Virus record (IMG/VR): IMGVR_UViG_3300043436_004687
Coordinates: 62,001 to 126,000 of that record
Reading direction: 5' to 3' (one strand)
Length of the DNA: 64,000 bases
Both the position numbers and the translations under genes were made by a program. Position 1 is the stretch's first letter; every line of letters starts with the position of its first letter. Under the pieces are notes generated by a model, which was not told the DNA's origin, did not search any database, and saw only the letters and a program-made list of their open reading frames with translations. This document shows positions 1,180-62,390 of the stretch, piece by piece.

Positions 1180-1185
1180 TTCCTT

Positions 1186-1485: not shown

Positions 1486-1515
1486 TTTTTTTTATGTATT
1501 TAATTTATTAATTAG

Positions 1516-1601
1516 AACTGGAAGTAGGATTCGAACCTACGGTGCACTTTTCAGTAATTAGGGTTGCAATCTAATGAATTCGACCACTTTTCTATTCCAG
1601 C
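1516..1601 (-). tRNA. tRNA-Cys(GCA) with long variable arm
   Basis: Acceptor GCTGGAA/TTCCAGT, U73 discriminator, anticodon loop TTGCAAC, T arm GTAGG-TTCGAAT-CCTAC. Confidence 0.85.
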
Positions 1602-20202: not shown

Positions 20203-21033
20203 CTAATTTGAATCTAATATAATATGTTTCCAAATTTTACCAAGTTTTATTTTATTTATTGTAGCTGGGTCCACATTGTATTTCTTAGCTAATGAAACAC
20301 CAGATTCATTATTTTTTAAACGTTTTTTAATCTCAATAACTTTAAAATCGGTTAATTTAGCTAAATGACATTGTTCACCATGATATGAATCCCTACATTT
20401 TTGTTTAACAATATCGCTAGTCTTTTTACCATAATTATGATTTTTATCACCAATTTGAGCTAAACTAATTTTTAATTTTCTTTCTTCGGTGGCTGGTTTA
20501 GTTTTATAACCAGATTTACCTTTATTCCAAGCTGGATAATTTTTTGCTTTACCTTTACTTGCTTTAGACATTTTTTCTTTAGTTTCAATGGACTTTAAAA
20601 CACCTTTAAACCTTTGACTGGTTTTTATTCTACATAATTCAGAAGGAACTTGACCTTTATGAGAATCGCTTAATCTTTGCTTAGTTAAATCTGAGACAAC
20701 ATAATTATCCCCACCTGTTGTTAAATTATAACCATCAATAAATGTTTTATGTTCATTTATTAATTCTTTCTCTTTCTCGTTTAAAATTTTAACTATTTGA
20801 TGTTTATCTGTTTCATTTTCTATTAAATAAATCACTTCAAATTTAAAAAATTCCTTACCATTTTTTTTATAACTTGCTTGTAAATATTTATTTGTATGTA
20901 TTCCTTTATTTAAAGCATATTTATGTTTGGCGATCCTCTCCTTAACATTTATTGATTGACCTATATAACCAGCCATTGTTTTAATATTTGTTATTTTATA
21001 AATCCCAGCTTTATTCCCTTCTAACTTATTCAT
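20203..21033 (-). CDS. GIY-YIG homing endonuclease with NUMOD3 repeats
   Basis: GIYKI...YIGQS, YNLTTGG, repeated S.ETK.KMS-type motifs. Confidence 0.9.
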   Translation of the reverse strand: MNKLEGNKAGIYKITNIKTMAGYIGQSINVKERIAKHKYALNKGIHTNKYLQASYKKNGKEFFKFEVIYLIENETDKHQIVKILNEKEKELINEHKTFIDGYNLTTGGDNYVVSDLTKQRLSDSHKGQVPSELCRIKTSQRFKGVLKSIETKEKMSKASKGKAKNYPAWNKGKSGYKTKPATEERKLKISLAQIGDKNHNYGKKTSDIVKQKCRDSYHGEQCHLAKLTDFKVIEIKKRLKNNESGVSLAKKYNVDPATINKIKLGKIWKHIILDSN

Positions 21034-28820: not shown

Positions 28821-28829
28821 ATTTATTTG

Positions 28830-28900
28830 CTCTTCCATCCAGACTCGAACTGGAAATAACTGATTAACAGTCAGACGTGATACCATTTCACTATGAAAGA
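28830..28900 (-). tRNA. tRNA-Asn(GUU)
   Basis: Acceptor TCTTTCA/TGGAAGA, anticodon loop CTGTTAA, T loop GTTCGAGT. Confidence 0.9.
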
Positions 28901-29108
28901 ATTTATTTTTTTGTTAATTTCAGAATCTTTTGTTTAGTATTTTTCTACATATCATCTTCTAAGTATTTTTCTAAATTACCTTCATTTAATTTAGAAATAA
29001 TAGTATTAATAATTTCATCTCTTTTATTTTTTAAACTAGGGTTATTAAATATAAAAATTAAATCTACAAAATCACCAATTAATAAGGTTTGATTTTCAGT
29101 TAATACCA

Positions 29109-29516
29109 TTATTTGTCTTTAAGATTTTCTCTAACTAAACGTTTAATTATGTCTTTATTTTCCTCTAAACCATTTTTAGCTTTCTTCTCCATTTTTTCTA
29201 ATCTATCATAATAATCAACAAATTCTGAAACATGATCAGTGGCTATTTCTCTAGCTTTTTCAATATCATCAGTGTGTTCTAATTCGACACCAATACCTTT
29301 ATCTATTTGTTTATTTATTACTGAAATATCAACACCATATTTCTTAGCTAAATCACTAATCGTTAAATTATCAGCATTACCACCAACCAATTTATTTTCT
29401 TCATTTATATTAGCATGCAAGGCTGCCATATATTTATTAACATCACCCTTTGTACAACCAATTTTATCATTGGTCCCTTTATGAAAAATACATTTACCCC
29501 TAATTTCGTATTGCAT
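29109..29516 (-). CDS. DUF5661-like phage protein
   Basis: GIGVELEHT..AREIA.DH...YY.RL..ME. Confidence 0.7.
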   Translation of the reverse strand: MQYEIRGKCIFHKGTNDKIGCTKGDVNKYMAALHANINEENKLVGGNADNLTISDLAKKYGVDISVINKQIDKGIGVELEHTDDIEKAREIATDHVSEFVDYYDRLEKMEKKAKNGLEENKDIIKRLVRENLKDK

Positions 29517-29535
29517 AATTTTTAATTTATTTTTG

Positions 29536-29608
29536 TGTCCCTATCAGGATTCAAACCTGAAAAATTTGGTTAGAAGCCAAATATGATATTCATTTTCATC
29601 ATAAGGAC
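29536..29608 (-). tRNA. tRNA-Arg(UCU)
   Basis: Acceptor GTCCTTA/TAGGGAC, anticodon arm TTTGG-CTTCTAA-CCAAA. Confidence 0.88.
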
Positions 29609-29613
29609 TTTTG

Positions 29614-29698
29614 AAGAGAGTGAAGGAATCGAACCCTATTCAGTTTCCCGAATGCACGGATTTCAAGTCCGCTTGACCACCGTTGGTCACCACTCTCC
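29614..29698 (-). tRNA. tRNA-Ser(UGA)
   Basis: Acceptor GGAGAGT/ACTCTCT, anticodon loop CTTGAAA, long variable arm, T loop GTTCGATT. Confidence 0.9.
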
Positions 29699-29705
29699 AA
29701 ATTTA

Positions 29706-29918
29706 TTACTTCATAATAGAACAATAAATTGCACCTATTATTACCGAGTAAAGAATAAATAAAAATATTAAATTTATAAAATTATAAAAATAATCATAAT
29801 AATTTAAATTCCTAAATTTTAAATATTCTTTTATTGTTACACCAAAAAACCTTGCTTGAGCCCAAATAGTTAAAAAAACCATTATTAAGGTAACAATAAT
29901 TAAAAAACCTAATTTCAT
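29706..29918 (-). CDS. hypothetical membrane protein
   Basis: Two hydrophobic helices; promoter -7 box at 29937..29944. Confidence 0.6.
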   Translation of the reverse strand: MKLGFLIIVTLIMVFLTIWAQARFFGVTIKEYLKFRNLNYYDYFYNFINLIFLFILYSVIIGAIYCSIMK

Positions 29919-29989
29919 ATTAATTTATTTTTTTTGCAAATATAAATTTAATTTACTTATCTAACAATAAAATTAATTTTATATTTTAG

Positions 29990-30061
29990 CACAGATAGTA
30001 AGCCAACGCACTTACAACTCAAGTTTTGGAGACTCGTATGATACTCTTTCACCATATCTGT
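29990..30061 (-). tRNA. tRNA-Trp(CCA), atypical T loop
   Basis: Acceptor ACAGATA/TATCTGT, anticodon loop CTCCAAA, T arm GTAAG-TGCGTTGG-CTTAC. Confidence 0.75.
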
Positions 30062-30065
30062 ATTT

Positions 30066-30143
30066 TGGGGTGGTATATCGGGATTGAACCGATGACCCTC
30101 GGTACCACAAACCGATGCTCTAACCAACTGAGCTAATACCACC
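30066..30143 (-). tRNA. tRNA-His(GUG) with encoded G-1, C73 and CCA
   Basis: G-GTGGTAT/ATACCAC-C-CCA, anticodon arm TCGGT-TTGTGGT-ACCGA. Confidence 0.92.
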
Positions 30144-30376: not shown

Positions 30377-31671
30377 CTGTTTAAAATCACATAATAAAAT
30401 ATAATTATTTTAACCAAGTGTTACCACTTGACTTGGATAAACAGCAATACCCTCTATTCCATTAGCAAACGCATTTGGAACTGCTTTTCTTAATATGTTA
30501 TAACTACCATTTACATCAGAGTTAATAAATTTATTTTCACCTCTAACTTTATACATACCTCGTTTATATCTATATCCACTAAACCCATTTGAATATTTAT
30601 CACCGTAAACTGGTATATAATCTAAATTTAAAAAACTAGCCTTGCTTGTATAACTTTCTTCTTGAAATAATACTTTAATACCGCTTAATAACCCTTTATA
30701 TTGTAACATACTAACTAATTTATCAAATGGTATTGAAACAAAATTTTGGTTGTTTCTCTTTCCCATATTAATTTCTTGTTTCCAAAAATTATTATGTCCA
30801 ACAATAATTGTGTTTAATTCATTTTCAAGACACCAATCAATTAAATATTTACTACTTTGATGCAAATAAGTCTCAATTTTATTATTCCTAATTAAACCTA
30901 ATTTAATTATTTTAGTGGTAGCTTTTCTTGATTTTAATTCAGCTAATTTTTTATTGAAAAATTGATTTATACTTTTTAATGGTCTACCATTAATAATGAT
31001 TGGTTTAACACCATTCTTATTTGAAGTTATAGTCATTAAATTATTTACCCCTAAATCAATAGAACAATAATTATCATTATTTTCTTTTAGTAATATGTTT
31101 TCTCTTTCATATACAATATTTATTTTAAATTTATTATAATATGGTTTAACTTGTACCTCAATTATTTTTTTATCTATATTTTTAACTTTAATTTGAATAT
31201 TTAAAGTTGATAAACCAATCAAACCGTTTTTAATATGTTTAGTTAAAACACTATTATCAATAAAAATAGCTGTAAATCTACCATCTTTTTTTAAATATTT
31301 AGGTAATTTTGGTTTACCTGTGAAACTATTTTTATTTGCTTTATATACTTTAGTTGCTTCAAAAAATCCTTTCCAATTTGCATCAAGTGTTCTAATAACA
31401 CATCTACTAACTCTAGTTGGTAATGCCTTATATTCTGGCAAATCTTTACAAATATTAAACAAATATAGTTTTCTTAACCAATTACCATTAGATATAAACT
31501 CATTTCTTATAATATAGTTTACAGAATTATATAAGTTTTTAGTTTTGAATGTTAATTCATCTAATTCTTTTGTTTTATTTACAATATGTGATTCAACTAA
31601 TTTCATTGTGTATTAATATATACTCCTTTATTATAAATATAAAACATTTTTTAAAAAAATTCAATAATTAC
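30377..31671 (-). mobile_element. non-autonomous tnpB-only element
   Basis: Ends GTAATT... and ...AAACAG resemble the IS607 ends; removal restores an ORF. Confidence 0.55.
30410..31606 (-). CDS. tnpB: TnpB (no zinc finger)
   Basis: CSIDLG, EESYTSK, NSDVNG. Confidence 0.9.
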   Translation of the reverse strand: MKLVESHIVNKTKELDELTFKTKNLYNSVNYIIRNEFISNGNWLRKLYLFNICKDLPEYKALPTRVSRCVIRTLDANWKGFFEATKVYKANKNSFTGKPKLPKYLKKDGRFTAIFIDNSVLTKHIKNGLIGLSTLNIQIKVKNIDKKIIEVQVKPYYNKFKINIVYERENILLKENNDNYCSIDLGVNNLMTITSNKNGVKPIIINGRPLKSINQFFNKKLAELKSRKATTKIIKLGLIRNNKIETYLHQSSKYLIDWCLENELNTIIVGHNNFWKQEINMGKRNNQNFVSIPFDKLVSMLQYKGLLSGIKVLFQEESYTSKASFLNLDYIPVYGDKYSNGFSGYRYKRGMYKVRGENKFINSDVNGSYNILRKAVPNAFANGIEGIAVYPSQVVTLG

Positions 31672-32388: not shown

Positions 32389-32830
32389 TTTGAATTATTT
32401 CCCTTATTTTCATTATTAATCTACCAAGATGGTTTTCACCTAAATTTGGGTTAGTATTCAAATCAACACCCCAAAATAAATCGTTGTGATAATTACCCTC
32501 TTGTATATTTTGGTTACCAGTTTCAATTAACTTACTCCTAAAAGGTTCTTTATTGAATTTTAATGAGAGACATTCCTCCATAACTTTCAGTTTTATATTA
32601 TCCCAATTATCTACAAATGGTTCCATATTTATTCGTTCTTGAGATAACTTTTTAATATTATATGGGGTTATTGTTTTACTAGTACAAAGTTCTTTCCAAT
32701 CAATAGAATTAAATTTTTCACTCATATAAACATGTTCAACTGATTGGAAAGTTCTACCCTTGTAAGTTATTTCAACCAGAGCCATATTAGATAACCACCT
32801 AAATTCTGGGTTTTTGAATGAATGGATCAT
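32381..32830 (-). CDS. NADAR (YbiA-like) domain protein
   Basis: WLSN, F.SVEH, KF, L..TG, D.FWG, G.N.LGRL.M..R. Confidence 0.9.
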   Translation of the reverse strand: MIHSFKNPEFRWLSNMALVEITYKGRTFQSVEHVYMSEKFNSIDWKELCTSKTITPYNIKKLSQERINMEPFVDNWDNIKLKVMEECLSLKFNKEPFRSKLIETGNQNIQEGNYHNDLFWGVDLNTNPNLGENHLGRLIMKIREIIQNV

Positions 32831-33984
32831 TAAATTAATTTTTTAAATTCTTCAATTTCTAATTTATTTACCATTTTACCAACTTCTGGACCAGATACAT
32901 TATATTTGTTAATCACATCCTGACCACTAATACTTAATTTATACTTAATAAAAGCATTTAAGAGATTATTATCTATTTCATGAACTAAATGTCCAAACCT
33001 TCTTAATTGTTCATCAGATAATCTTATGTTTGATTGTAATTTCTTAGCTAATGGTGCGTTTTCAATTGTTAAACCCAATAAAGAAACTAAAAATGAAATT
33101 GATTTTACTTCCTCACTTGAATAGGTAAGAGTATTTAACTGTTTTTTTAATAAATCAACAGAATTATTTCTCAATAAAAAAGCTAATAGAATAACATAAT
33201 CCTTTTCTTCAATAAAATCACTATCAACATTCAACCCCCTAAATATTTCTTTAAAGAGATCATATCTTTTATATAAATCCAATAAAAATTTGATTGATTG
33301 TGCTGATTGAATTGATTTTAATAATTCATCTCTAATTCTTTCATTTGAAACTCCGTTTAAACTAGAATTTTTTAATAATTGTTTATCAACATCCTCATCA
33401 ATTTTTGAGTTATATCTAGCACTAAACCTACAAAATCTTAAAATCCTTAGTGGGTCTTCTTCAAATCTATCTTCTGCTTTACCAACAGTTCTAACAATAT
33501 TATGTTTAATATCACTAATACCACCAACCAAATCAATTATTTCACCCTTATCAATGTCATAATAAAGAGCGTTGCAAGTAAGATCTCTTCTTTCAGCATC
33601 GGTGTTTATTGAAACACCTAATTTAACTTCTGGGTGTCTTCCACTAGAATCTGAACGCATAGTTGCTATTTCATATTCATCATTATCGGTGAAAACATTG
33701 ATAACACCGAACGACTTCCCAGTGGCTAATGTTTTATAACCAGATTGTTGTAACATATTTTCAACACTATCTGGTAAAGCATCGGTAACCAAATCATAAT
33801 CTTTTATTTTTTTCCCCAATAAAGAATCTCTAACGGCCCCACCAACAATAAAAATAGAATAATTATTATCTTTAAATAATTTATTCATTTTTTTTATATC
33901 TTCTGGTACATTTATAGGGAATTTTAATCTAATTTCCCCATTTAAAGCCTCATTAAGCCTTTGCTTTATAAAATTTTTAATCAT
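32830..33984 (-). CDS. cca: CCA-adding tRNA nucleotidyltransferase (class II)
   Basis: VGGAVRD, DYD, RRDLT.NAL, EDPLRILR, ERI..EL. Confidence 0.9.
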   Translation of the reverse strand: MIKNFIKQRLNEALNGEIRLKFPINVPEDIKKMNKLFKDNNYSIFIVGGAVRDSLLGKKIKDYDLVTDALPDSVENMLQQSGYKTLATGKSFGVINVFTDNDEYEIATMRSDSSGRHPEVKLGVSINTDAERRDLTCNALYYDIDKGEIIDLVGGISDIKHNIVRTVGKAEDRFEEDPLRILRFCRFSARYNSKIDEDVDKQLLKNSSLNGVSNERIRDELLKSIQSAQSIKFLLDLYKRYDLFKEIFRGLNVDSDFIEEKDYVILLAFLLRNNSVDLLKKQLNTLTYSSEEVKSISFLVSLLGLTIENAPLAKKLQSNIRLSDEQLRRFGHLVHEIDNNLLNAFIKYKLSISGQDVINKYNVSGPEVGKMVNKLEIEEFKKLI

Positions 33985-34051: not shown

Positions 34052-35382
34052 CGTTCATTAAAACTTATGAAAATCTAGGATTCTCACTTATCCCAATTTC
34101 TATAGATTAACTCTATATGGGTGAACGGCAACACCCTCTATTCCGTCAGCAAAAGCATTCGGAACTGCTTTTTTAAGTATATTATAACTTCCATTTACGT
34201 CAGCATTAATAAGTGTATTACTCGCAGATTGAAATAACCCTCGCTTGATTCGTTTACCTACGTAAACCTCATGTTTAGTTATTTTTTCATTATCTAAAAA
34301 TGAACACTTACTGGTATAACTCTCTTCATGTGTTATAAAATTAATTCCGTGTTTCTCACATTTATATGTAAGCATTTGAATTATTTTATAATAAGGGATC
34401 TGAACAAAGTTCTGGTTGTTGACTCTACCAATATTAATACCTTGTTTCCAATTCTCATTATAGCCAACAACAAGTGTATTTAATTCATTCTGTAAACAGA
34501 ATTTAACAAGATAATCAGTTGATTTATGTAAGTAATCATTTACTTTACAATCTCTTTTAAAAGTTAACTTCTGAATACGTTTAGATGTCTTTACATTTTT
34601 AGGTAATGCGCTTTGGTAATTAGATTTTTGTTTATTGTAAAATTGATTTATGGATTTTAATGGTCTACCGTTAACTACTACAGGTTTAGTTCCTGCCTTG
34701 TTTGATGTTATAGTCATTAAATTGTTAAGTCCTAAATCAACTGAACTATAATGTTTATTATCTTTCTTTAAAGGTTGTTCTTTATGGTCATATATTATAT
34801 TGATTTTAAATTTATTTGTTCTTGTGGGGATTACTTGCACTTCGATTAATTTACCAGTTGTTTGTAATGGTATTCTTAATTTAAGTGAAGATAATCCAAT
34901 TTTACCATTTTTAGGTTTAAGTATTGCTGTTTCATAAAACAAGGCAGTAAACTTTCCATTTTTAGGTAAATACTTGGGTAAATTAGGTTTAGCTTTAAAC
35001 AGTTGCTTATTAGCTCTCCATTTTTTAATACAAGAGAAGAATGATTGCCAGTTAGCATCTAAAGTTCTAAGAACACCACGAGCAATACGTACTGGTAGAC
35101 ACTTATATTCTTCAATATCTTTACAGATGGTAAACATATCGAATTTAGAAATGTATTTACCAGTAGAAATAAATTCGTTACGGATAATGTAATTAGCTTT
35201 ATTATAAAGGTTTTTACATTTAAACGTAATTTGGTTTAGTTCGATAGACTGATTAATGATATGTGATTCAACTAGCAGCATTTAATAAGTGTAATAATTT
35301 TCTTTACTCTACATATAAATATATAGAAAAATGTAAAAGTTTGATTTAGATAAAGAATAAATTATTAAATAATGTTAATAAC
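34052..35382 (-). mobile_element. non-autonomous tnpB-only element (ends approximate)
   Basis: Left end GTTATTAAC resembles IS607 GTAGTTAAC; right end ...TGAACG|G. Confidence 0.45.
34100..35281 (-). CDS. tnpB: TnpB, paralogue of 30410..31606
   Basis: SSVDLG, EESYTSKCS, NADVNG; shared VESHI N-terminus. Confidence 0.9.
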   Translation of the reverse strand: MLLVESHIINQSIELNQITFKCKNLYNKANYIIRNEFISTGKYISKFDMFTICKDIEEYKCLPVRIARGVLRTLDANWQSFFSCIKKWRANKQLFKAKPNLPKYLPKNGKFTALFYETAILKPKNGKIGLSSLKLRIPLQTTGKLIEVQVIPTRTNKFKINIIYDHKEQPLKKDNKHYSSVDLGLNNLMTITSNKAGTKPVVVNGRPLKSINQFYNKQKSNYQSALPKNVKTSKRIQKLTFKRDCKVNDYLHKSTDYLVKFCLQNELNTLVVGYNENWKQGINIGRVNNQNFVQIPYYKIIQMLTYKCEKHGINFITHEESYTSKCSFLDNEKITKHEVYVGKRIKRGLFQSASNTLINADVNGSYNILKKAVPNAFADGIEGVAVHPYRVNL

Positions 35383-42165: not shown

Positions 42166-43392
42166 TTAAAGAAAATTGGGTTTTTTGTTTAAAGATTTAT
42201 TCATAATATTAAAATTATGAATCACATTAGATAAATCTAATGGCTCTGCCATAAGAGCAATATGGTTATTAAAGTATCTGTTTAAAATATTAATAGCAGC
42301 ATTTAAATCTCTATCTATTTCTATATCATTACTTAATTTAACTGTTCTATCACTTAAATTAATTTTATTTTTAAATTGTTTACCAGTTAATGAATTAGTT
42401 TGTGTTGTATATTGTTCATTTTGCTTTAGAATATCTGTTTTATACTTAAAACTTTTTTGTTTCAATAATTCAATAAACATATTAAGATTACTCATCCCAA
42501 ATGATTTACTTATCTTTTTATATTTATTCTCATAATTATTCATTAATTTTTTAACGGATAAATCACCAATAACTATAGTTTTATAGTTCATGTTCAATAA
42601 TTGTTTACTCTGAACATGTAGAGTTTGTTTGACTTGCTTATTTTTCTTATTATATAATTTATTAATAGTTATTTTTAATTTTTTATATTTTCTACTACTA
42701 TTATTTTTATTACTTAATTTACTCTGAACTTTAGCAATTTGTTTTAAATAATATTTAGATATCTGTTTAGATTTATTTGTAATAATAATTTGATTACCTT
42801 TATTATCTACACCAGTACCTAATCGTTTTAATCCTAAATCAATTGCTAATATTTTATTTTCTTGTGTAATAGTATCCACATATATCAATTCTTCTTCAAT
42901 AACAATATCACACAACCATTTATTATTAACAAATTTAACCCTAATTTCTTTAATATCTAATTTAGTTAAATCCAAATGTGATTTATAATTGAGTTTAATT
43001 TTATTAATTGTGATTAATTCATTAGAATTAACAACCCAACCAGATTGATTAAATATGATAGTATGAAATTTATTAATATCCTTTATTTTATATGGCGATT
43101 TAGCTGTTTTATCTTTTTTAATTAATTCGAAAAAACCCCTATATGAAGAATAAACTTCTTTAGATATCCGCTGACATGCTTTAGAATTTAATTTACATAA
43201 ATTACTATTTTTTCTTAATACTGTTATTTCTTTATCTAAGTCATAATTATGTCTAATTGATTTATTTAATTCATAAGACTCTTGTTCAAGATCAATTAGT
43301 TTATTCCATAATTCATTTCTTAATGATGATACCTCATGAAGTTGTTCAACTTGTAATTTATTAGGAAACAATCTAATTATGTAAGTTTTCAT
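42166..43392 (-). CDS. tnpB: solo TnpB
   Basis: IRLFPN N-terminus, LAIDLG, NEQYTTQ, DRDLNAA. Confidence 0.9.
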   Translation of the reverse strand: MKTYIIRLFPNKLQVEQLHEVSSLRNELWNKLIDLEQESYELNKSIRHNYDLDKEITVLRKNSNLCKLNSKACQRISKEVYSSYRGFFELIKKDKTAKSPYKIKDINKFHTIIFNQSGWVVNSNELITINKIKLNYKSHLDLTKLDIKEIRVKFVNNKWLCDIVIEEELIYVDTITQENKILAIDLGLKRLGTGVDNKGNQIIITNKSKQISKYYLKQIAKVQSKLSNKNNSSRKYKKLKITINKLYNKKNKQVKQTLHVQSKQLLNMNYKTIVIGDLSVKKLMNNYENKYKKISKSFGMSNLNMFIELLKQKSFKYKTDILKQNEQYTTQTNSLTGKQFKNKINLSDRTVKLSNDIEIDRDLNAAINILNRYFNNHIALMAEPLDLSNVIHNFNIMNKSLNKKPNFL

Positions 43393-53194: not shown

Positions 53195-54025
53195 TTAATT
53201 ATTTTTAAGAAAATTATATAATTCACTAGAATTTAATCGTAATTTTTTTATAGTTGAAGCATTAATTTGTCTAACCCTCTCCTTTGAGAGATTAAACTTT
53301 TCACCAATATCTTCTAAATCCATTGTTTCTGGGTAAGAATTTAAACCATAGTACATTTCAATCATATCTCTCTCCCTAGGTTGTAATAAACTTAATGTTT
53401 TTTCCAACACTTTAGCTAATTTTGTATTATCTATTTTAGATAAATCTTCTTCAATACTACTATCTAATAAATATTCTAAAGCCTCATCATTATCTTCACC
53501 AATAAAATTATTTATTGAAGTACAAATTGGTAGAACTAATTCTTCATATTCTTCACCGTCAATCATTTCACCATTTATTGGATATCTTTTATTGATGGAT
53601 TCAAATCTTTCAATTCTTTTTTTATTAAGCGTTTCTTTTATTATAACATTTACTGGTAATCTAATGGTCCTAGCGTTAAAATTAAGACTTTCTATTATAG
53701 ATTGTCTAATCCAATAAACTGCATATGATATAAATTTAAATCCTTTAGTGTAATCAAATTTTTTAGCAGCTTTGATTAAACCATAATTACCTTCACTAAT
53801 TAAATCACTAAATAACAAACCTTGACCTTGATAATCCTTAGCTATTGAAACTACAAATTTTAAATTAGCTGACACTAAGGCATCGACTGCTTTAGGATCA
53901 CCATTTTGTATTCTTTTTGCTAATTCAACCTCTTCTTCTGGGGTTAAAGATTTAGTTTTTTTAATTTCTTTGAAATAATTATTTATGGTATCTTCTGAAC
54001 TAATGGTTGCATAATTACTTTTCAT
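53195..54025 (-). CDS. RNA polymerase sigma70-family factor (no region 1.1)
   Basis: ANLKFVVSIAK.Y, DLI.EGN.GL..A..KFD...GF.F.SYAV.WIRQ, region 4 LS.ERVRQI. Confidence 0.92.
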   Translation of the reverse strand: MKSNYATISSEDTINNYFKEIKKTKSLTPEEEVELAKRIQNGDPKAVDALVSANLKFVVSIAKDYQGQGLLFSDLISEGNYGLIKAAKKFDYTKGFKFISYAVYWIRQSIIESLNFNARTIRLPVNVIIKETLNKKRIERFESINKRYPINGEMIDGEEYEELVLPICTSINNFIGEDNDEALEYLLDSSIEEDLSKIDNTKLAKVLEKTLSLLQPRERDMIEMYYGLNSYPETMDLEDIGEKFNLSKERVRQINASTIKKLRLNSSELYNFLKNN

Positions 54026-54538
54026 TTATTTGTTAATATTTCCTACTTTGTTATTGTTAAAGAGCGCATTTAATATGTTTTTTTCCTCTTCATTTATATT
54101 TTCTAACCCCTTATCTAATATTTCATCAATAAGTTTTATTTTTTCTTCTTGTGAATAAACTATGGGTTCTTGTTTAAGTATTTTAATGTCAACATCAATA
54201 TACTTAACCTTAGTTTTAGGTTGCACTAAAATTTCAACCTTATTTTTATTTTGTTTGACACAAAACTTATCGAATAAATGCCCTTTAATCCTATCTGGTA
54301 AATTATAAATTAAATTTTTTTCTTCATTTATAAACAAAAAGAAAACTAAACCATCGTGTTCACTTAATAAATTTTCAATTTCACCTAATTCAAAAGCGGA
54401 TGTAAATGTTATAAAAAAATTATTTTTTATGTAAGCATAACTTGGAGCTTCATTGGAAATTGATTTTATTTCTTCTTTGAGAATTTTGCTTAATTTTTCG
54501 TCAATAAAAGCAATCAAACAATATTTTTTTATTTGCAT
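54026..54538 (-). CDS. hypothetical protein
   Basis: 170-aa ORF ending IDEILDKG. Confidence 0.7.
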   Translation of the reverse strand: MQIKKYCLIAFIDEKLSKILKEEIKSISNEAPSYAYIKNNFFITFTSAFELGEIENLLSEHDGLVFFLFINEEKNLIYNLPDRIKGHLFDKFCVKQNKNKVEILVQPKTKVKYIDVDIKILKQEPIVYSQEEKIKLIDEILDKGLENINEEEKNILNALFNNNKVGNINK

Positions 54539-54589
54539 AGTTAATATTTAATTAAGGCAAATATAGTAATAAGATCAATACTTTACAAC

Positions 54590-56833
54590 CTATTTGAGCA
54601 TTAATTTTGAGATGTGATTTATCTTATTGATTGTTATTAAGTTATCAGCCCAATTTTTAACCTCTTCTTTGTGGGTTATAAAGAAAACAATATCAAACAT
54701 GGCCTTTATTTTCTCAAACATAGGTTTAATCAATGGTATATTTTCTTCAGCAACCGTACCACTAATAACCTCATCAAATGTTATAAAATTAGGCATTGGT
54801 AGATGTGATAATTTACCCAAAACGCATCTTAATGCAATACTAGAAACGGTCTTCTCAAAACCACTACCAGATTTTAAAGGTTGTTCAATACCATCTTTAC
54901 TGATTAAATACTCCACTTCATTTTTTGAATTAATGATAAGCTCCAATTCAAAATCACAAACATCATCCATAAGTCTAACTAATTCTGAATTTATAATAGG
55001 TAAAACAGACCTTAAAACAAGTTTACTAATACCTTTTTTCCCCATCATTTCAATATAAACTTTAAAAATCTTCTCTAATTCTTCTTCAACTTTAATTTTT
55101 TTAAGTATTAATTCATTATTTAAAATAGATTTATCTTTATCCTCTAATAACAATTCCGTTGTAGTAATGAATCGATTAGAATCATCCCTTTCTTTTTCTT
55201 TGACTAGAATATCGGTTTTTACTAAAGAAACTTCGACATCGACATTACTATTAAATGTGATTGAATTCTTATTTTGTTCATATTTTTTTAAATCACTATT
55301 TTTAGATTTTATTTTTTCCCTAAGTCCATTTAATTCAACTTCTAACCTTTCTTTTTTCAATTCAAAGTTATTCTTTTTATCAACTTTAACTTTGGTTTCA
55401 TTTAAAACATCGATCTTACCTTTTAAATCTATAATAATTTTATTAATTTTCGACAATTCTTTGTGTTTATCATCTAATAAACCATTATTTTTTTTAATAT
55501 CTTCTGAGTGATCTACATTATCTAAAGGTTTTGAACATGTTGGGCAGAACTCACCATTGACAAGTTGATCAACCAACTCATTTAATTTTAATATTTCAGA
55601 ATCTAAAATTATTTTCTTAGAATTTTGCTCATTTAATGTTTTATTTAAATTTTGATATTCATTTTCATTATACTCTACATTACCTATAAGTTGTATTTCT
55701 TTAACTAAATCATCTATCTGTTGTTTAACAGATTTCCCAGTTATTGTTATTTTATCAACATCATCTTTTAAAGTTAGTGGATTTAACTGAGTAATAACAA
55801 CATCAATAGTGTGTTTAGAAGATAATAATTCATCTTTTTTATTATTTAAATTTACTAACTCATTATTAATTAATAATAAATTATTTTTTTCATTTTTTAA
55901 TAATTCTTTATTTGTATTGATGTCTTCTTTAGCTGTTGAAATTTCTTCCAGTAAAGTTGTTTCATTATATATGTTAGTTTGTTTAGTTTTAGAAAAGGAA
56001 TTATACATTTCTCTAACAGCCTTTTCTTTTAAGTCTAAAATTTCTAAACCAATAAACCTGGTTAATAACTTACCACTTTCAGTTGGTGAACTATCAATTA
56101 AATCTTCTAGATTTTTAGCGGTTGCTAATATAGTTATGTCAAAATCTTTTTCATTACCAACTATCTTTTCTATTTCTAATGAGGTTTTTTTAGCATCCTC
56201 ATCATTCATTAAGATTTCTTCACCATCTGGAAGAATTTCAAAATAGTTAACATTATTTTTTATATTAAAGCCACCCTCCCTTTTAGAACTTCTAGTCATC
56301 TTTCTTTCGATAATAATTTCTTTATTATCGAATCCTACCATACCTCTAACACTCAATTCATTTTTATCCGAAAATAAGTTAAATATTTGCTCGTTTTTAT
56401 CTGTTTTTGTTGTTTTACCAAAAAATAAAAATTTAACAGAATCAACTGAAAATGTTGTATTATGTGAAACTATACCATTTGAATAATATTGGTGGACATC
56501 ATCTACTTGAATATCGAATAAATCATTTTTTTCAGGTAGAATTTTAATATTTTCTACTTCACTTAATCCATCTATGGTTTCTATTAAATCACCAATTTTA
56601 ATTTCATTTAAATTAATGAAATCACCATTATTATTTTTTAATTTATGTAAATCAGCACCTTCAACATACATACCATTTTTTAAATCACATCTATAAACCT
56701 CGGCATTTTTTTCAGTTATACCACACCAACTAATATTATGGTAACCATAAGGATTTTTAACTTTAAACCCCAAATCACCATACTTTTCATATATTTTATT
56801 TAAATCACCAATTTTAATTTCTTTATTCATCAT
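54590..56833 (-). CDS. sbcC: split intein C-part (aa 1-125) fused to the C-extein of an SbcC/gp46-like ATPase
   Basis: Block B GADLH, blocks F/G DLFDIQV..YYSNGIVSHN|T; then coiled coil, CPTC hook, SGSGFE signature, FDE Walker B, ITH. Confidence 0.92.
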   Translation of the reverse strand: MMNKEIKIGDLNKIYEKYGDLGFKVKNPYGYHNISWCGITEKNAEVYRCDLKNGMYVEGADLHKLKNNNGDFINLNEIKIGDLIETIDGLSEVENIKILPEKNDLFDIQVDDVHQYYSNGIVSHNTTFSVDSVKFLFFGKTTKTDKNEQIFNLFSDKNELSVRGMVGFDNKEIIIERKMTRSSKREGGFNIKNNVNYFEILPDGEEILMNDEDAKKTSLEIEKIVGNEKDFDITILATAKNLEDLIDSSPTESGKLLTRFIGLEILDLKEKAVREMYNSFSKTKQTNIYNETTLLEEISTAKEDINTNKELLKNEKNNLLLINNELVNLNNKKDELLSSKHTIDVVITQLNPLTLKDDVDKITITGKSVKQQIDDLVKEIQLIGNVEYNENEYQNLNKTLNEQNSKKIILDSEILKLNELVDQLVNGEFCPTCSKPLDNVDHSEDIKKNNGLLDDKHKELSKINKIIIDLKGKIDVLNETKVKVDKKNNFELKKERLEVELNGLREKIKSKNSDLKKYEQNKNSITFNSNVDVEVSLVKTDILVKEKERDDSNRFITTTELLLEDKDKSILNNELILKKIKVEEELEKIFKVYIEMMGKKGISKLVLRSVLPIINSELVRLMDDVCDFELELIINSKNEVEYLISKDGIEQPLKSGSGFEKTVSSIALRCVLGKLSHLPMPNFITFDEVISGTVAEENIPLIKPMFEKIKAMFDIVFFITHKEEVKNWADNLITINKINHISKLMLK

Positions 56834-57839
56834 TATTTTTTAAAAAATTAATACATTTATTTAATTCTACTTCTGGATTACTTCTATATTCCGAATCCCA
56901 TATTATTAAAACCTCAAAACCTTCTTTTTTAGCTAAGTTTATTTTTTTTTCATCTCTATCCCAAATCTCTTTAGCGGTTAATTTTTTATTAAATGGGTTT
57001 GGGAAACTGTCTGCATTATAAAGTTTAGGATTCCCATGAAATAAATCGCCATTATATTCAATAATTTTTTTATTTTTTAAATCAGTAAAATCATATCTAA
57101 AAAAACTTCTTTTATCTTTTATCATTAACTCACCACCCATTTCACTAAATTTAATATAATTTAAATCGCTCAAATTATAAATTTTAATTAATTCTCTAAA
57201 CATTTTTTGAGATATTTCAGAACAACCTACTTTTAATTTGCCATTTCTAAATAAACTTTCTTGCCATTTAATTTGTCTTTCATTCCAAACTTTTAAACCC
57301 TCTTCTTCCCCATACTTTTCTATGCATTTTGATAAATTAAATGTAGTTTGTCTTTCAGATTGTTTTATTTTAGCTTCTTCTTTATTAAACCCTTTTTTTA
57401 ACCAAAATTCGATATTAGCACTACCCATTTTACCACAAGTACTTCTTAACTTTTCCCTACTATTCCATTTTAACAATCCTTCTTTTTCACCAAATCTAGC
57501 AATACAGCCTTTTAAAGAGCACATTTTTTGGCCGTCTGTTTGATCTTTAGCTTCCTTATCAGAATAACCTCTACTAGTCCAATATTCAATATTCGTTGGT
57601 TGTAACGTCTTAACATGTTTTATTGCCTCTTCTTCATTTAAACCTCTTTGTATCCAATATTTTATAGAATAAGCCGACCCTTTTGCAATTGAAACCCCAC
57701 TATTTTTTAATCTATTAGTAATTACCTCTGGATCAACATTAAACTTATCTGCAATAAATCTTGTTGATTTTAACTCAATTAAATATAAATTAACCATTTC
57801 ATTTAATTGTTCTTCTGTAAATTTAATTTTATTCGCCAT
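56823..57839 (-). CDS. free-standing Vsr-like/PD-(D/E)XK homing endonuclease with internal repeats
   Basis: C-terminal IIEYNGDLFHGNP..W.RD..K...LIIWDSE; three YW..RG-type repeats. Confidence 0.8.
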   Translation of the reverse strand: MANKIKFTEEQLNEMVNLYLIELKSTRFIADKFNVDPEVITNRLKNSGVSIAKGSAYSIKYWIQRGLNEEEAIKHVKTLQPTNIEYWTSRGYSDKEAKDQTDGQKMCSLKGCIARFGEKEGLLKWNSREKLRSTCGKMGSANIEFWLKKGFNKEEAKIKQSERQTTFNLSKCIEKYGEEEGLKVWNERQIKWQESLFRNGKLKVGCSEISQKMFRELIKIYNLSDLNYIKFSEMGGELMIKDKRSFFRYDFTDLKNKKIIEYNGDLFHGNPKLYNADSFPNPFNKKLTAKEIWDRDEKKINLAKKEGFEVLIIWDSEYRSNPEVELNKCINFLKNNDE

Positions 57840-57897
57840 TATATCTATTTTAAAATAAATATAACCGACTAATTAAAAAGGCAAATAGATTTAAATT

Positions 57898-58473
57898 TTA
57901 TTTTAGTTCATCAGGTAAAAAACCTATTTTTTTTATTATTTCACTGGGGTCAAATTCAATATCTATAATAGTATCATATTTCACACATTTACCACCAAAA
58001 TTTGCTGGTGATGATGTGATTATATTAAGCCCACTTAACTTATCAAATGAAATAAAATTACCTTCTCCAAAACAAAGAAAATTATTTATACTCAACCATT
58101 TTAATGAATAAGATCTTTGTTTCACATCTTCACCATGAAAACTAACATCCGTATTAATTTTATCATCTAACTTTAAAAGTCTATCAAAATCAACATCTTT
58201 TTTTTCATTATCAAACCAACTTTTCATTAATTGTCTTTGATAATTCACATCCATTATATTTTCAACCCCAGCTCCAGTTATCTCAATTAGCTCACCATTT
58301 TTATCTGTTTTAACTGGTGTATAAATAACCGTAATATTTTCTTTATTTATATTATATTTTTTAGAAAAATCATTTCTAATTTTTAATTTAGCTTCTCTAG
58401 AATAATTTTCTGTTTTATCAGACCATTGTACTTTTACCTTTGCATTAGGTGGAACCATTAATTTATCTTTCAT
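57898..58473 (-). CDS. sbcC: SbcC/gp46 N-extein (162 aa) plus a 29-aa split intein N-part
   Basis: LSINNFLCFG, then NFGGK|CVKYDTII (intein block A) and a stop 29 aa later. Confidence 0.9.
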   Translation of the reverse strand: MKDKLMVPPNAKVKVQWSDKTENYSREAKLKIRNDFSKKYNINKENITVIYTPVKTDKNGELIEITGAGVENIMDVNYQRQLMKSWFDNEKKDVDFDRLLKLDDKINTDVSFHGEDVKQRSYSLKWLSINNFLCFGEGNFISFDKLSGLNIITSSPANFGGKCVKYDTIIDIEFDPSEIIKKIGFLPDELK

Positions 58474-58485
58474 TAATTTAATATT

Positions 58486-58680
58486 TTATTTATTTATCTT
58501 TTTTTCCCAAATTTTATAACCTTCATTATAACAAAAATTATGAAATTCATCACTTTGATTTACTATCCAACTCCCATTATCTAATTTAATTGAACCACCA
58601 TTTTTATTTATGTACCAACTAATAAAATCATTATTTGATGAAAATAAACGCATGCAAAAGTATTTTAAATATTTACTCAT
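58486..58680 (-). CDS. hypothetical protein
   Basis: 64-aa ORF. Confidence 0.6.
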   Translation of the reverse strand: MSKYLKYFCMRLFSSNNDFISWYINKNGGSIKLDNGSWIVNQSDEFHNFCYNEGYKIWEKKINK

Positions 58681-58858
58681 CTTTTTCTATTTTAAAACCA
58701 CAAGATTCACACTTACCATATTTTTCGGAACATTCTAAGCATATTTTATCACAAGGGATATGTGCAGTAGATACTTCTGTATCACACAATTCACATTTAC
58801 CATAAGAAAATGCATGTAATACTATTTTATTTTTACAAGAGCTGCAATAGTTACTCAT
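58673..58858 (-). CDS. small Cys-rich zinc-finger protein
   Basis: Four CxxC-type pairs. Confidence 0.65.
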   Translation of the reverse strand: MSNYCSSCKNKIVLHAFSYGKCELCDTEVSTAHIPCDKICLECSEKYGKCESCGFKIEKDE

Positions 58859-59064
58859 TATTTAATTTCATATTTAATAACATCAAATATTGGTTCGAAT
58901 TTTGATGTTTCCTTATTTAACTTTAAAGCCATATATGTACCCGCTGGACCATCATTTATATATCCAGGTATGTAATAATTAATATAATACATAGAATTAT
59001 TACTATCTTCAATAAAACAATATTTATAATAAAGTTTAGCTATGACATTCTTAATAACTTTCAT
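58858..59064 (-). CDS. hypothetical protein
   Basis: 68-aa ORF. Confidence 0.55.
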   Translation of the reverse strand: MKVIKNVIAKLYYKYCFIEDSNNSMYYINYYIPGYINDGPAGTYMALKLNKETSKFEPIFDVIKYEIK

Positions 59065-59065
59065 A

Positions 59066-59290
59066 TTATTTATTGGTTAGGATTTCTTTATTATTTTCAA
59101 TATCCTCAACAGATTTAACCTTAAAATTATAAAAACCAAAGTTTGTTTCTATATTATGTTCAGTAAATTCTCTACTTTCAACATCCCAACTTAAAAACCC
59201 ATGATTACCAACAGATTCCCCAAAATTGTTTTGTAAAAGACTACCGCTAAAACAAATAGGTGTTAATTTTTTTATTTTAATTTTTTTCAT
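59066..59290 (-). CDS. sbcD: C-terminal fragment of the SbcD/gp47-like nuclease
   Basis: ICFSGSLLQNNFGE..HGFL.WD matches the Y.GS..Q..FGE segment that follows GDIH in Mre11/SbcD. Confidence 0.85.
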   Translation of the reverse strand: MKKIKIKKLTPICFSGSLLQNNFGESVGNHGFLSWDVESREFTEHNIETNFGFYNFKVKSVEDIENNKEILTNK

Positions 59291-59294
59291 ATTT

Positions 59295-60149
59295 TTATAC
59301 TGTTAAATTATTAAACCAATTAATAACTTCTTTATTTTTATTATCATAACCCATAAAATTAATTTTATATCTAATATTTAAACTATTGAAATAAAGTAAA
59401 GAAGCCTCACATTTTAATTTAAAATTATTAATATTAATTATATAACCTTTTACTTCTTCCATTATTTTAGTACCATCTTTATTAATAATTAAAAAATCTG
59501 GTAAATATCTTTTTACTTTATTATCTTCAATATATTTAATTACATGACCATGTTTTTTTGTCCAAAAAATAACCTCATCATCTAAATCTAATTCATTCAT
59601 CCTTTTCTCTTCAAAAGATGAATGATAATATTCTTTAACATTTGTTTTTTTATTATCATAATACCCTCTTTTAAAATTATTTGAACCAATAACCCCATTT
59701 TCAGATATTCGTTTAATATTAGCTATTGAAATTTTATTTCTAAATTCATCATTTTGAAAATCAAAACTACCATCTTCAGTTCTATGCCTATCTAAGAATG
59801 CTAAATGTTTCACTAATCTTTCAGGAGTTTCCCAACTTTCTGTTATTTTTTTACTTATTAACAACCTCATATCAGCATTATGGAAACCCCATTTATTTTC
59901 TCTACCAAAATTACCATTATTTTCACCTAACTGATAATATTTTTGCCAATTTATTTGACAACTTATTGAACAAAATTTACGTTTAGCTGTGATTGTGGTT
60001 TCAAATATATTAGTACAACCAGTGTATTCACATTGTTTATTAATTCTTTCTAATTTTTTATTAGATTGCCCACAAATTCTGGAACAATATTTTTGTTTTG
60101 TTTTATAAGTTTTAAATTCTAATTTACAAGATTCACAAGTTTTTATCAT
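59295..60149 (-). CDS. free-standing endonuclease: Cys/Zn repeats plus a TnsA-like PD-(D/E)XK domain; start reassigned to MIKTC
   Basis: C..C...KYCS..C twice; S.FE, Y.PDF, EVKG; TATTTATA motif lies inside the longer ORF-track extension. Confidence 0.75.
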   Translation of the reverse strand: MIKTCESCKLEFKTYKTKQKYCSRICGQSNKKLERINKQCEYTGCTNIFETTITAKRKFCSISCQINWQKYYQLGENNGNFGRENKWGFHNADMRLLISKKITESWETPERLVKHLAFLDRHRTEDGSFDFQNDEFRNKISIANIKRISENGVIGSNNFKRGYYDNKKTNVKEYYHSSFEEKRMNELDLDDEVIFWTKKHGHVIKYIEDNKVKRYLPDFLIINKDGTKIMEEVKGYIININNFKLKCEASLLYFNSLNIRYKINFMGYDNKNKEVINWFNNLTV

Positions 60150-60195
60150 ATTTATATCTTTATTTATAAATATCACCAAAAAAAACTAAATCACA

Positions 60196-60882
60196 TTAAT
60201 TATCAATTAACCACCCATCTTTTATATATTGTTTTAACTCATTTTCATCAATTTCTTTAGTTTGTTTATAATAAAAATTTTGCCTTTTATGAATATCACC
60301 AAGCATTACGATATCACAACCCTCAAAATGTTCTAATGAAGTTGCGTGCTCAAATTCATAACCAATATCTGTTTTTGCACCTAATATTGGCCCATGAAAA
60401 AGTCCTATTGTAGTATATTCACCCTTATTATTAATTTTAAAAGCTTCAATATCTGGTCTTTCATTATCCTGAAAAATGGAATAATTTGCCCAGATAATAT
60501 TATCATCCAAATAACATTCACTATCTTTAAAATAAGAAATGTTTGGGTTGTTTAATAATTTAACCATGGGAGTGATAGAATCCATTCTATCTTTATTATT
60601 TAGATTTAAATCATGGTTACCAGCCACTATTATAAGTGGCGCAATATCAGAGAGTTTTTTTAAAAATTGAGTACATATTGTTAATTGTTCATTGGAGATT
60701 ATTGTCTTGCTATGTACCAGATCACCAACTAAAGCAATTCTAACTTCACTATATTCATACCCCACCATTAATTCTTTTAATTTAAGATATAAATCATCAA
60801 ATACTTCTTGAAACTCTTTATGTAAGACATAGGTTCTGATATGGATATCACTAATGTGAAAAATTAATTTTACTTTATTCAT
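60196..60882 (-). CDS. sbcD: N-terminal fragment of the SbcD/gp47-like nuclease
   Basis: SDIH, GDLVH, GNHD, FHG, GDIH motifs; stops before the GS..Q..FGE segment. Confidence 0.9.
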   Translation of the reverse strand: MNKVKLIFHISDIHIRTYVLHKEFQEVFDDLYLKLKELMVGYEYSEVRIALVGDLVHSKTIISNEQLTICTQFLKKLSDIAPLIIVAGNHDLNLNNKDRMDSITPMVKLLNNPNISYFKDSECYLDDNIIWANYSIFQDNERPDIEAFKINNKGEYTTIGLFHGPILGAKTDIGYEFEHATSLEHFEGCDIVMLGDIHKRQNFYYKQTKEIDENELKQYIKDGWLIDN

Positions 60883-60951
60883 TTAATATTATTTATTGCA
60901 AATATAAATTCAAAACTAATAAGTTGCAACTATTTATAGTAAAATAATAGA

Positions 60952-61443
60952 ATGAAAGAATTTATATTAAATAAACTAAGAGAGAATTTATTAAAAGAGT
61001 CTGTAGACACTAAAAAGTTGTTAGATTTAGCCTTAAAAAGTTCGTTTGAAAGTGAAAGTTTAGCTAAAAATTATATCACAAAATCAATAAAAGAATTAAA
61101 TAACTTACCTGATATAATTACATTATATAGGGTTATATTTGCTAAAGATAAAAATTCAATAAATCAAAAAGAAATTGGTAGTCATTATGTGATGAATAGA
61201 AGACAATTAGAACAAAGTCATCAATTTATTAGTCATGTGGGTGGTGGGACTCCATTTATGTTAACAGTAAAGGCACCAAAATCATTAATTGATTTGGAAA
61301 CTACGTTGGAGAACAAAGTAATGTACCCACATGAAAATGAAATAACTTTAAAGAATAAAGGTGTTGGTGCTAAGATAATTAGGATTGACTCATTTCAAGC
61401 GGAAGAAGATGGATTTGATGGATTTGATCCTTATGATTATTAA
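60952..61443 (+). CDS. hypothetical protein with ADP-ribosyltransferase-like motifs
   Basis: LYR ... GSH ... ENE spacing (R-S-ExE). Confidence 0.45.
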   Translation: MKEFILNKLRENLLKESVDTKKLLDLALKSSFESESLAKNYITKSIKELNNLPDIITLYRVIFAKDKNSINQKEIGSHYVMNRRQLEQSHQFISHVGGGTPFMLTVKAPKSLIDLETTLENKVMYPHENEITLKNKGVGAKIIRIDSFQAEEDGFDGFDPYDY

Positions 61444-62390
61444 ATTCTACTTTCTTTAAGTTTATGTGCCGTTTTTAAGACATTATAAACCCCCCTTTTT
61501 GATTGTTTTTGGTGAATTAATGATAAGTCCCAATCTTCACCTAATTTAACGATTCTAACCCTATTATATAAATTTAAAGTATTTAATTGTTTATATAATC
61601 TAACAGCATCTTTATAAGCATCACCATCAAACACAATTACAACTAAACCAGTTGCTTTATATTGTAAGTCGTAAAATAATTTTTCAGAAACCATTTTACC
61701 CAAATTTATTATTGGGTTAGGGCAAACTATCCCATCGAATGCACCCTCAACAAGATATATCGTTGCATCCCAATTAATCATTGATTCATTAAAATGAATG
61801 AGTGTTTTTTTAAATTCTGGGTTTAAATATTTAGGTTTACCCCACTTTAAAAAAGTTCTTGCAATAAAAAAATCTAATTCGTTATTTAAATTATATGATG
61901 GAATTATAATTCTATTTGCAAATTTACCTATTGTGGTAAAACCAATTTTATATTTTTCTATTATATCTGGGGTAATATTCCTAATTTTTAAATAAGTCAT
62001 AGCTTCTTTATATTTTGGAATATTGGGGTTGCAGTTAATTAATGGAGTATAACCCTCTGGTAAAGAAATTACTTCAGAAATTAGTGGTATATTATCTTCT
62101 GTTTTGTAAATTGGGTTTACTAGGGAATAATCTTTTAAGTTTTGTGATGTCCCAAATCTTTTTATTAACTTAGGTAATGAACCACCCATATTATCAGTAT
62201 CATAACAAGACCAACATCTAAATTTATTTTTAATGTAATTTACTTCTAAATTATGTTTACCATCACCTTTTGTTAGACCCTTATTAAATGCACATGCTGG
62301 GCAATCATATTGCAATTGCCCAGAATCCTCATTATGATAATGAGGTTCACCTAAAAAACTATCTAATATATTTACAATTAAATGTGACAT
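61440..62390 (-). CDS. DnaG-type DNA primase (zinc finger + TOPRIM)
   Basis: CPAC..CWSC, RIIIP, YLVEG.FD, FDGDA. Confidence 0.85.
   Translation of the reverse strand: MSHLIVNILDSFLGEPHYHNEDSGQLQYDCPACAFNKGLTKGDGKHNLEVNYIKNKFRCWSCYDTDNMGGSLPKLIKRFGTSQNLKDYSLVNPIYKTEDNIPLISEVISLPEGYTPLINCNPNIPKYKEAMTYLKIRNITPDIIEKYKIGFTTIGKFANRIIIPSYNLNNELDFFIARTFLKWGKPKYLNPEFKKTLIHFNESMINWDATIYLVEGAFDGIVCPNPIINLGKMVSEKLFYDLQYKATGLVVIVFDGDAYKDAVRLYKQLNTLNLYNRVRIVKLGEDWDLSLIHQKQSKRGVYNVLKTAHKLKESRI

Follow-up and report, generated by a model that had tools for sequence, protein, structure and literature searches.

Organization of the sbcC locus

The 64,000-nucleotide (nt) window analysed here (positions 62,001 to 126,000 of IMG/VR record IMGVR_UViG_3300043436_004687; coordinates below are those of the window) contains an SbcC/Rad50 gene that is fractured within its Walker A motif, with a segment of a split intein at each side of the fracture. 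Three co-oriented open reading frames (ORFs) on the minus strand encode, in order, the N-terminal part of SbcC with the N-terminal intein fragment (IntN), a nuclease-like protein of 338 amino acids (aa), and the C-terminal intein fragment (IntC) with the remainder of SbcC. The first ORF (57898..58473, 191 aa) comprises a 162-aa N-extein (57988..58473), which ends in the first part of Walker A (…SSPANFGGK) and corresponds to positions 218-327 of the PHROG SbcC profile phrog_77, followed by a 29-aa IntN (57901..57987) and a TAA stop codon (57898..57900). Its junction is …SSPANFGGK|CVKYDTIIDIEFDPSEIIKKIGFLPDELK (reading GGK|CVKYD…GFLPDELK), with the IntN coding DNA running from TGT GTG AAA to CTA AAA, and IntN contains Cys1, strands beta1-beta2, a family-specific helix and a GFLPDELK tail.

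The last ORF (54590..56833, 747 aa) starts with MMNKEIKIGDL… and reaches …YYSNGIVSHN|TTFSVD at residue 125/126. It is opened by two adjacent ATGs, giving an IntC of 125 aa, or of 124 aa from the second ATG at 56830. IntC (56459..56833) includes helix alpha1, block B His63, block F Asp107 and block G His124-Asn125, and is followed by a 622-aa C-extein and stop codon (54590..56458), of which Thr+1 (56456..56458) is the first residue and which matches phrog_77 positions 334-952 (E=1.2e-30). The intein halves are separated by a gap of 1064 nt, which holds a 58-nt leader (57840..57897) and the gene of a putative free-standing homing endonuclease (56823..57839, 338 aa; phrog_22677, E=8.7e-31), whose TAA overlaps the start of IntC (ATGATGAATAA). 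An earlier note on this DNA, made from the sequence alone, had given the ORF coordinates, the junctions, the 29-aa IntN, the ~125-aa IntC and Thr+1, and all of these are confirmed base for base.

Conserved features of the intein halves

A Cys directly follows the N-extein in the window (GGK|C) and is present at this position in 14 of 14 related IntN segments. His63, Asp107, His124 and Asn125 are invariant among 22 diverse IntC proteins, and every locus has Thr or Ser at +1. IntC scores 22.9 bits with the NCBIfam model TIGR01443 ('intein C-terminal splicing region'; curated cutoff 15.6), and profile matches in the PDB include VidaL (E=1.4e-13), gp41-1 (2.7e-10), CatC (2.8e-8) and NrdJ-1 (9e-6). 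Pfam HINT models match IntC below threshold only, so Pfam alone would under-call the intein, and TIGR01443 and the comparative data are needed to recognize it. IntN together with 15 extein residues gives no match to the PDB. The assignment of GADLH as block B in the earlier note holds for its His, which is invariant, but the usual Thr position is Ala in the window clade and Ser (SPxH) in others.

The 29-aa length of IntN is found at 14 loci, in 13 of which it ends with …(L/I)GF(L/I)P(D/E/N)ELK* and in one (L015) with …ELS*; at L016, the fifteenth locus, IntN is 30 aa long with the end …KELIE. The last 13 residues form a conserved element beyond block A and are the most conserved part of IntN after Cys1, with Gly22, Phe23, Pro25, Glu27 and Leu28 invariant while their codons vary synonymously (all four Pro25 codons are used). 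The IntN stop codon and the IntC ATG are kept in 14 loci, including those with gaps of only 27-46 nt, and the ratio of nonsynonymous to synonymous substitution rates (dN/dS) is 0.11-0.14 for IntN and 0.05-0.16 for IntC. With high confidence, we interpret the locus as a class-1 intein, naturally and atypically split, that interrupts a jumbo-phage SbcC/Rad50 directly behind the lysine of Walker A, has a putative homing-endonuclease gene at its break, and is predicted to splice.

The host gene and its intein-free alleles

The exteins carry the motifs expected of SbcC, namely Walker A, a coiled coil with a CxxC zinc hook, the signature motif, Walker B DE and the H-loop, and the invariant C-extein residues include C305/C308, S532-G533, D562-E563 and H596 (A5 numbering). 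C-extein dN/dS is 0.07-0.26, and the partner gene sbcD lies upstream of sbcC. The stretch of phrog_77 left uncovered between the matches of the two halves is exactly the P-loop.

The C-extein used as a single-protein query retrieves only its source contig, and a profile was needed to find orthologues; this was built from the exteins only, such that the search is unbiased as to intein presence, and the closest 80 SbcC orthologues were examined; IMG/VR contains ~390 orthologues. Intein-free genes make up 62 of these, the intein is split in 14, and it is contiguous in the remaining four. The intein-free genes have an uninterrupted …N(Q)GGK|T(T)… and continue with TTFSVD, and each of the seven measured is encoded by one ORF of 782-790 aa, in which the N part, up to …N(Q)GGK, is 161-168 aa long. 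The +1 Thr is the Walker A Ser/Thr itself. Given these intein-free lengths and the GGK|T sequence, precise splicing would restore the native Walker A/P-loop, and the 784-aa product (162+622) that the earlier note had predicted falls within their range. The comparison of 14 split loci with intein-free alleles likewise bears out its proposal of a naturally split intein with a short IntN and a long IntC inserted after the Walker A lysine.

Cultured phages have no near-identical match to the DNA of the locus, and tblastn of the C half against them gives only ~24% identity, to the SbcC of a Twort-like Staphylococcus phage. There is no cultured relative in the cultured-phage collection searched.

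Position of the break

With 29 aa, IntN is short (below ~40 aa) and, with 124/125 aa, IntC is long (above 100 aa). Among the short-IntN inteins in the literature, VidaL and PolB16 are of the S1 type, broken after beta2, and AceL-TerL and GOS-TerL are of the S2 type, broken after alpha1. The start of IntC aligns with the residues just ahead of alpha1, the first helix of VidaL. The secondary structure of IntN was taken from an AlphaFold2 (AF2) model of the contiguous intein of a relative, L005, which has a predicted local distance difference test score (pLDDT) of 93.6 and a predicted template-modelling score (pTM) of 0.86, and in which beta1 and beta2 are followed by an extra helix (residues 17-24), the coil FLPDELNE, a short strand (34-36) and the long helix alpha1 (37-47). 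The break maps to the coil between the extra helix and the strand that precedes alpha1. It is therefore S1-type, between beta2 and alpha1, in agreement with the earlier note. In a Foldseek search with the L005 model all 50 listed matches are inteins or intein-like (BIL) HINT domains, the top one being VidaL (E=1e-11, template-modelling (TM) scores 0.80/0.87, root-mean-square deviation 2.4 Å, 25% identity).

The helix and GFLPDELK together constitute a 13-residue insertion that is specific to this family and is kept in IntN. The corresponding region of the contiguous relative L005 reads …KKLGFLPDEL-N-EEITIGEL…, and those of L003, L019, P0015, P0016, P0032 and P0035 are similar; the contiguous relative P0025 (GGK|CVTKETKIKIKIND-DIKEITIGELNDIF…) is without the tail. 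We infer that the insertion is the docking handle of IntN. Charge complementarity between the two intein fragments was looked for and not found, and hydrophobic docking is therefore more likely.

The putative nuclease gene and other gap contents

The distance from the IntN stop codon to the IntC ATG is 27, 45 or 46 nt where there is no gene, and the longer gaps measure 96, 271, 555, 901, ~1060-1080, 1208, 1376, 1499 and ~1590 nt. Loci L001, L007 and L010 are nuclease-free empty sites, and the nuclease gene is thus facultative. Orthologues of the 338-aa protein (44-58% identity) occupy the same site in seven loci, and the position is filled in L020 by a GIY-YIG/NUMOD3 endonuclease (E=1.2e-10) instead, which together sustain the earlier view that an endonuclease gene, on this comparison a mobile one, lies between the halves. 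The gaps of L012, L015 and L016 encode proteins with a Ros/MucR zinc-finger module, and L006, L011 and L002 have an additional ORF of ~140-170 aa. In a DNA alignment of occupied and empty sites, the 58-nt leader includes a motif that it has in common with the orthologous cassette of L008, CCTTTTTA-TTA…GGTATATTTATTT; a scan for promoters and terminators gave matches at chance level.

The N half of the 338-aa protein is all-helical, with repeated motifs and weak helix-turn-helix (HTH) matches. Residues ~55-200 contain, approximately, three copies of [Y-W-x-x-R-G-x-s-x-x-E-A] alternating with two of [C-I-x-k-f-G-E-x-e-G-l-x-x-W-x-x-R]; these repeats are recognized by no Pfam NUMOD model, and they also occur in the inserts of L012 (437 aa) and L015 (391 aa), which are different in other respects. 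The C-terminal part is an alpha/beta domain in which E261, D265, H268 and D315 (also D250 and D253) are invariant in seven orthologues, and the dN/dS of the nuclease is 0.14-0.35. Foldseek with the AF2 model of the whole protein (pLDDT 79.8) retrieves Vsr (1cw0, probability 1.00, TM(target) 0.59; 1vsr, 0.97/0.54) and I-Bth0305I (3r3p, 0.93/0.64) as the sole nuclease folds. Sequence models give no significant match (TIGR00632 vsr, E=0.098, 12.9 bits against a cutoff of 97.85; PF18741, E=0.033), and a profile of the seven orthologues finds neither Vsr nor 3r3p in the PDB, only weak HTH matches. The proposal of a Vsr-like endonuclease thus stands at the level of modest fold matches and the conserved E/D/H/D residues, and fails to gain a sequence-profile match; 'Vsr/EDxHD-like homing endonuclease' is the best label for this putative enzyme, as suggested by its modelled fold.

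The EDxHD endonucleases typified by I-Bth0305I (PMC3239194) have a helical N-terminal DNA-binding region and a C-terminal nuclease domain of ~100 aa, a layout that the window protein appears to share, and its conserved E, D, H and D may correspond to theirs. They differ in that the window nuclease has no significant profile match, its N-terminal repeats fall outside Pfam NUMOD, and it is free-standing at an intein break rather than within a group I intron.

Distribution and mobility

When the 125-aa IntC is searched exhaustively with HMMER, 483 proteins match at E<=1e-3, of which 72 reach E<=1e-10, and dozens of 50%-identity cluster representatives, ~740-770 aa long, have the IntC domain from residue 1. 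More than 200 proteins in a 90%-cluster database have this IntC-first architecture, with 61-71% identity over IntC; they derive from JGI, ENA, Logan and NCBI, on contigs of up to 365 kb, and are labelled only SbcC or hypothetical. Relatives are encoded at 366 IMG/VR loci.

Intein presence is scattered across the host tree. On a tree of 79 SbcC C-exteins it requires at least 12 changes, compared with a mean of 16.4 after shuffling, and near-identical hosts may differ in state, such that L096 has no intein and L135 a split one. The extein DNA of L119 (split) and L115 (contiguous) is ~95% identical, but their intein segments are only ~60-80% identical. Intein synonymous divergence (dS) is lower than that of the host in three close pairs with unsaturated dS (0.53 vs 1.68, 0.64 vs 1.24 and 0.98 vs 2.11). 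Scattered presence, the mismatch of intein and host divergence and the lower intein dS thus indicate, on comparative grounds, that the element spreads horizontally and does so in split form. Vertical inheritance of the split within a clade, as read from intein-bearing genes alone, was overturned by the addition of intein-free orthologues, among which presence proved to be scattered.

In the intein tree two contiguous forms, L003 and L005, nest within an otherwise all-split clade of 18 members. L003 (5923-6363) and L005 (5920-6372; also L115/L116 and L146/L147) are nested among split relatives in both the host and the intein trees, and the junctions of the first two differ (…GVLPDE-ITIGEL… in L003 and …GFLPDEL-N-EEITIGEL… in L005). 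Each of these two contiguous inteins may have been re-fused from a split form independently of the other. Re-fusion would be the simplest reading of the contiguous forms, with moderate support from trees of a short domain. We put forward tentatively, as somewhat short of an even chance, the broader proposal that the split form, rather than the contiguous one, is the long-lived, horizontally moving state, that the post-beta2 loop with its tail is a second non-canonical landing site in HINT domains for free-standing nuclease genes of several families, and that the rare contiguous alleles L003 and L005 are re-fusions. If so, short-IntN split inteins would be the common natural form in phage P-loop ATPases rather than curiosities, and intein splitting would be reversible in nature.

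Predicted trans-splicing and alternative explanations

IntN, contributing Cys1, beta1-beta2, the helix and the GFLPDELK tail, would dock on IntC, which would supply the rest of the HINT fold, probably via hydrophobic contacts. Splicing would then follow the standard route, in which Cys1 undergoes an N-S acyl shift, the N-extein passes to the Thr+1 hydroxyl, Asn125 cyclizes and an O-N shift follows, and would yield an SbcC of 784 aa whose GGK-TT P-loop is intact. During co-infection the nuclease would cut cassette-free genomes of related phages, and repair would copy the element in. The nuclease gene would often be lost or replaced; the split intein would persist because SbcC needs precise intein removal.

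Several points weigh against this interpretation. Splicing, association of the fragments and nuclease activity are all things that we infer. The modelled relative L005 is 66% identical over IntC and is a contiguous protein rather than the two separate pieces of the window; as charge complementarity is lacking between the fragments, their mode of docking can only be guessed; block B carries Ala at a position where most inteins have Thr; and the Vsr/EDxHD assignment derives from Foldseek matches with E values of 0.06-0.6 and from sub-threshold hidden Markov model matches. Variants at the block B Thr position are tolerated by some inteins.

It is improbable that the intein halves only join the SbcC fragments non-covalently, or splice very poorly, with a two-piece SbcC that works or fails with the intein in place. 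The neighbouring SbcD is fractured without an intein, in the way described by Dassa et al., which is apparently tolerated, and has conserved extra tails at its break, and non-covalent reassembly therefore has a precedent in the SbcC/SbcD complex itself; but from the structure of ABC ATPases a domain of ~150 aa between the P-loop Lys and Thr is expected to block ATP binding, and a dimerization handle would have no need of Cys1, the block B His, the block F Asp, the His-Asn pair and the +1 Thr/Ser, which are invariant and under strong purifying selection.

Less likely still is that the gap DNA is a self-splicing intron with a nuclease ORF, or is traversed by stop-codon readthrough, such that the precursor is contiguous and the intein not really split. 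Vsr-like homing endonuclease genes do sit in group I introns, and the gap lengths of L001 and L010 are divisible by three. The 1064-nt gap of the window is not, however; no Rfam family is found in 54000..61500 at E<=1; the gaps of 27-46 nt in relatives could not accommodate an intron, and every one of them has a separate stop codon and ATG as well as further in-frame stops; and diverged loci retain both the stop codon behind ELK and the Met with which IntC starts. A decaying SbcC pseudogene broken by a nuclease gene, or an assembly artefact, might be entertained in a genome with so many selfish elements, among them four TnpB-like ORFs, a GIY-YIG homing endonuclease gene and the fractured SbcD, but is just as remote, as both SbcC halves are full-length and conserved with the low dN/dS given above. 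The data analysed show neither a build-up of frameshifts or stops in the halves of relatives nor long reads at odds with the junctions. Misassembly, which the earlier note had named as a threat to its reading, is excluded by the recurrence of the same architecture in more than 200 protein clusters and in many assemblies made independently, and by 100% identity of the window region to a 339,635-bp IMG/VR contig.

Relationship to known split inteins

The window intein is a homologue of VidaL (PDB 6vgv/6vgw), a Cys-dependent intein with an atypical S1 split and a 16-aa IntN. The two have homologous HINT domains, a break between beta2 and alpha1, Cys1 and a …GIVSH(N) C-terminus, and differ in the length of IntN, with 13 extra residues here that are absent from VidaL and from the contiguous P0025, as well as in the +1 Thr of the window intein and perhaps in the host, which here is the SbcC P-loop.

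Fractured phage genes with split inteins and free-standing homing endonucleases were described by Dassa et al. 2009 (PMC2677866), with gp41-1, NrdJ-1, IMPDH-1 and others as examples. The arrangement is the same as here, with extein-IntN, endonuclease ORF and IntC-extein in this order on one strand, a phage origin, and hosts that function in DNA metabolism; their endonucleases are Vsr-like or GIY-YIG, and gp41-1 and NrdJ-1 are among the nearest structures to the window intein. Those inteins are broken at the canonical site, however, whereas the break here is near the N-terminus, and SbcC is not among the hosts in PMC2677866. AceL-TerL, GOS-TerL and Cat-TerL resemble the window intein in their short IntN (25-37 aa), long IntC and phage P-loop ATPase host, and CatC is a detectable relative, but they are broken after alpha1 (S2), which here belongs to IntC, and have a terminase host and +1 Cys in place of SbcC and +1 Thr.

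The P-loop is a known hot spot for intein insertion. A literature search found no split intein named for SbcC, gp46 or Rad50, with InBase, patents and the VidaL papers lying outside it. Fractured phage genes, atypical splits and P-loop insertion are thus already known, and what is added is a large, unannotated, VidaL-related family in SbcC. The earlier note had called short-IntN inteins rare, which is so for characterized examples, with only four natural ones named in the literature consulted (AceL-TerL, GOS-TerL, VidaL and PolB16), but not in nature, where 14 of 18 intein-bearing SbcC alleles are split in this manner.

The value of short-IntN inteins lies in protein semisynthesis, for which an IntN of peptide size can be prepared chemically, and this family, with hundreds of diverged IntN/IntC pairs and a +1 Thr/Ser, is a source of candidate semisynthesis pairs. 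Its kinship to the fast VidaL intein, combined with a longer and strongly conserved docking tail, provides a natural experiment on the role of the tail. The earlier note had suggested that the pair may be new and orthogonal; by homology, cross-reactivity with VidaL is conceivable. Alleles that are split with a nuclease gene, split and empty, contiguous, and intein-free are found for one gene in one phage group, so that the order of fracture, nuclease turnover and possible re-fusion can be studied directly.

Genome context and other fractured genes

The window is a stretch of ~25% GC from a 340-kb phage genome that is crowded with selfish elements and RNA-repair genes. The adjacent sbcD (59066..60882, minus strand) is broken up by another kind of nuclease gene and has no intein. 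Its N piece (60196..60882, 228 aa) has an extra tail of ~25 aa, …KQTKEIDENELKQYIKDGWLIDN*, and its C piece (59066..59290, 74 aa) starts with ~10 additional residues; the ORF in the break (59295..60179, 294 aa) has zinc ribbons and weak TnsA/endonuclease-I-like matches. A HINT-profile match in this ORF (E=0.017, 11 bits) was dismissed as noise. The same break and conserved tail are present in L002, L003, L005 and L006, and sbcD is intact (~268 aa) in L001, L004, L007, L010 and L014. The arrangement agrees with the 'SbcD-like' fractured gene, likewise without an intein, that Dassa et al. 2009 (PMC2677866) described, and the tails may serve to keep the two pieces in contact. Some relatives have SbcD and SbcC fused, as proteins of 1000-1200 aa (P0016, the same as L019, and P0032), in which a contiguous intein is kept in the SbcC P-loop.

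Four TnpB/OrfB_IS605-like ORFs with Cas12f-like TNB domains, all with Pfam scores above cutoffs, lie within 18 kb on the minus strand (24447..25604, 30410..31606, 34100..35281 and 42166..43392), and a free-standing GIY-YIG + NUMOD3 homing endonuclease gene is located at 20203..21033 (minus strand). Five tRNA genes, together with an RlaP-like nucleotidyltransferase, a Thg1-like tRNA-His guanylyltransferase and a CCA-adding/poly(A) polymerase-like enzyme (coordinates 1095..1601, 28829..30142, 5360..6460, 16563..17393 and 32830..33984), form a tRNA repair/maturation toolkit.

Short-IntN splits appear to be common in phage ATPases. Other short-IntN splits of P-loops are present at distant viral loci (L024, L027, L028, L030-L033, L035, L047 and L062; L055 and L065; L039, L042, L046 and L057; L044), with host assignments read from the start of the C-extein only. 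Those in gp46/Rad50-like hosts have an IntN of 26-32 aa with a different amphipathic tail, …DPxxxKKFKEFLKN; those in the SbcC-like L055 and L065 have an IntN of 33-37 aa that includes alpha1 (S2-like); and the other distant hosts look terminase-like or DnaB-like.

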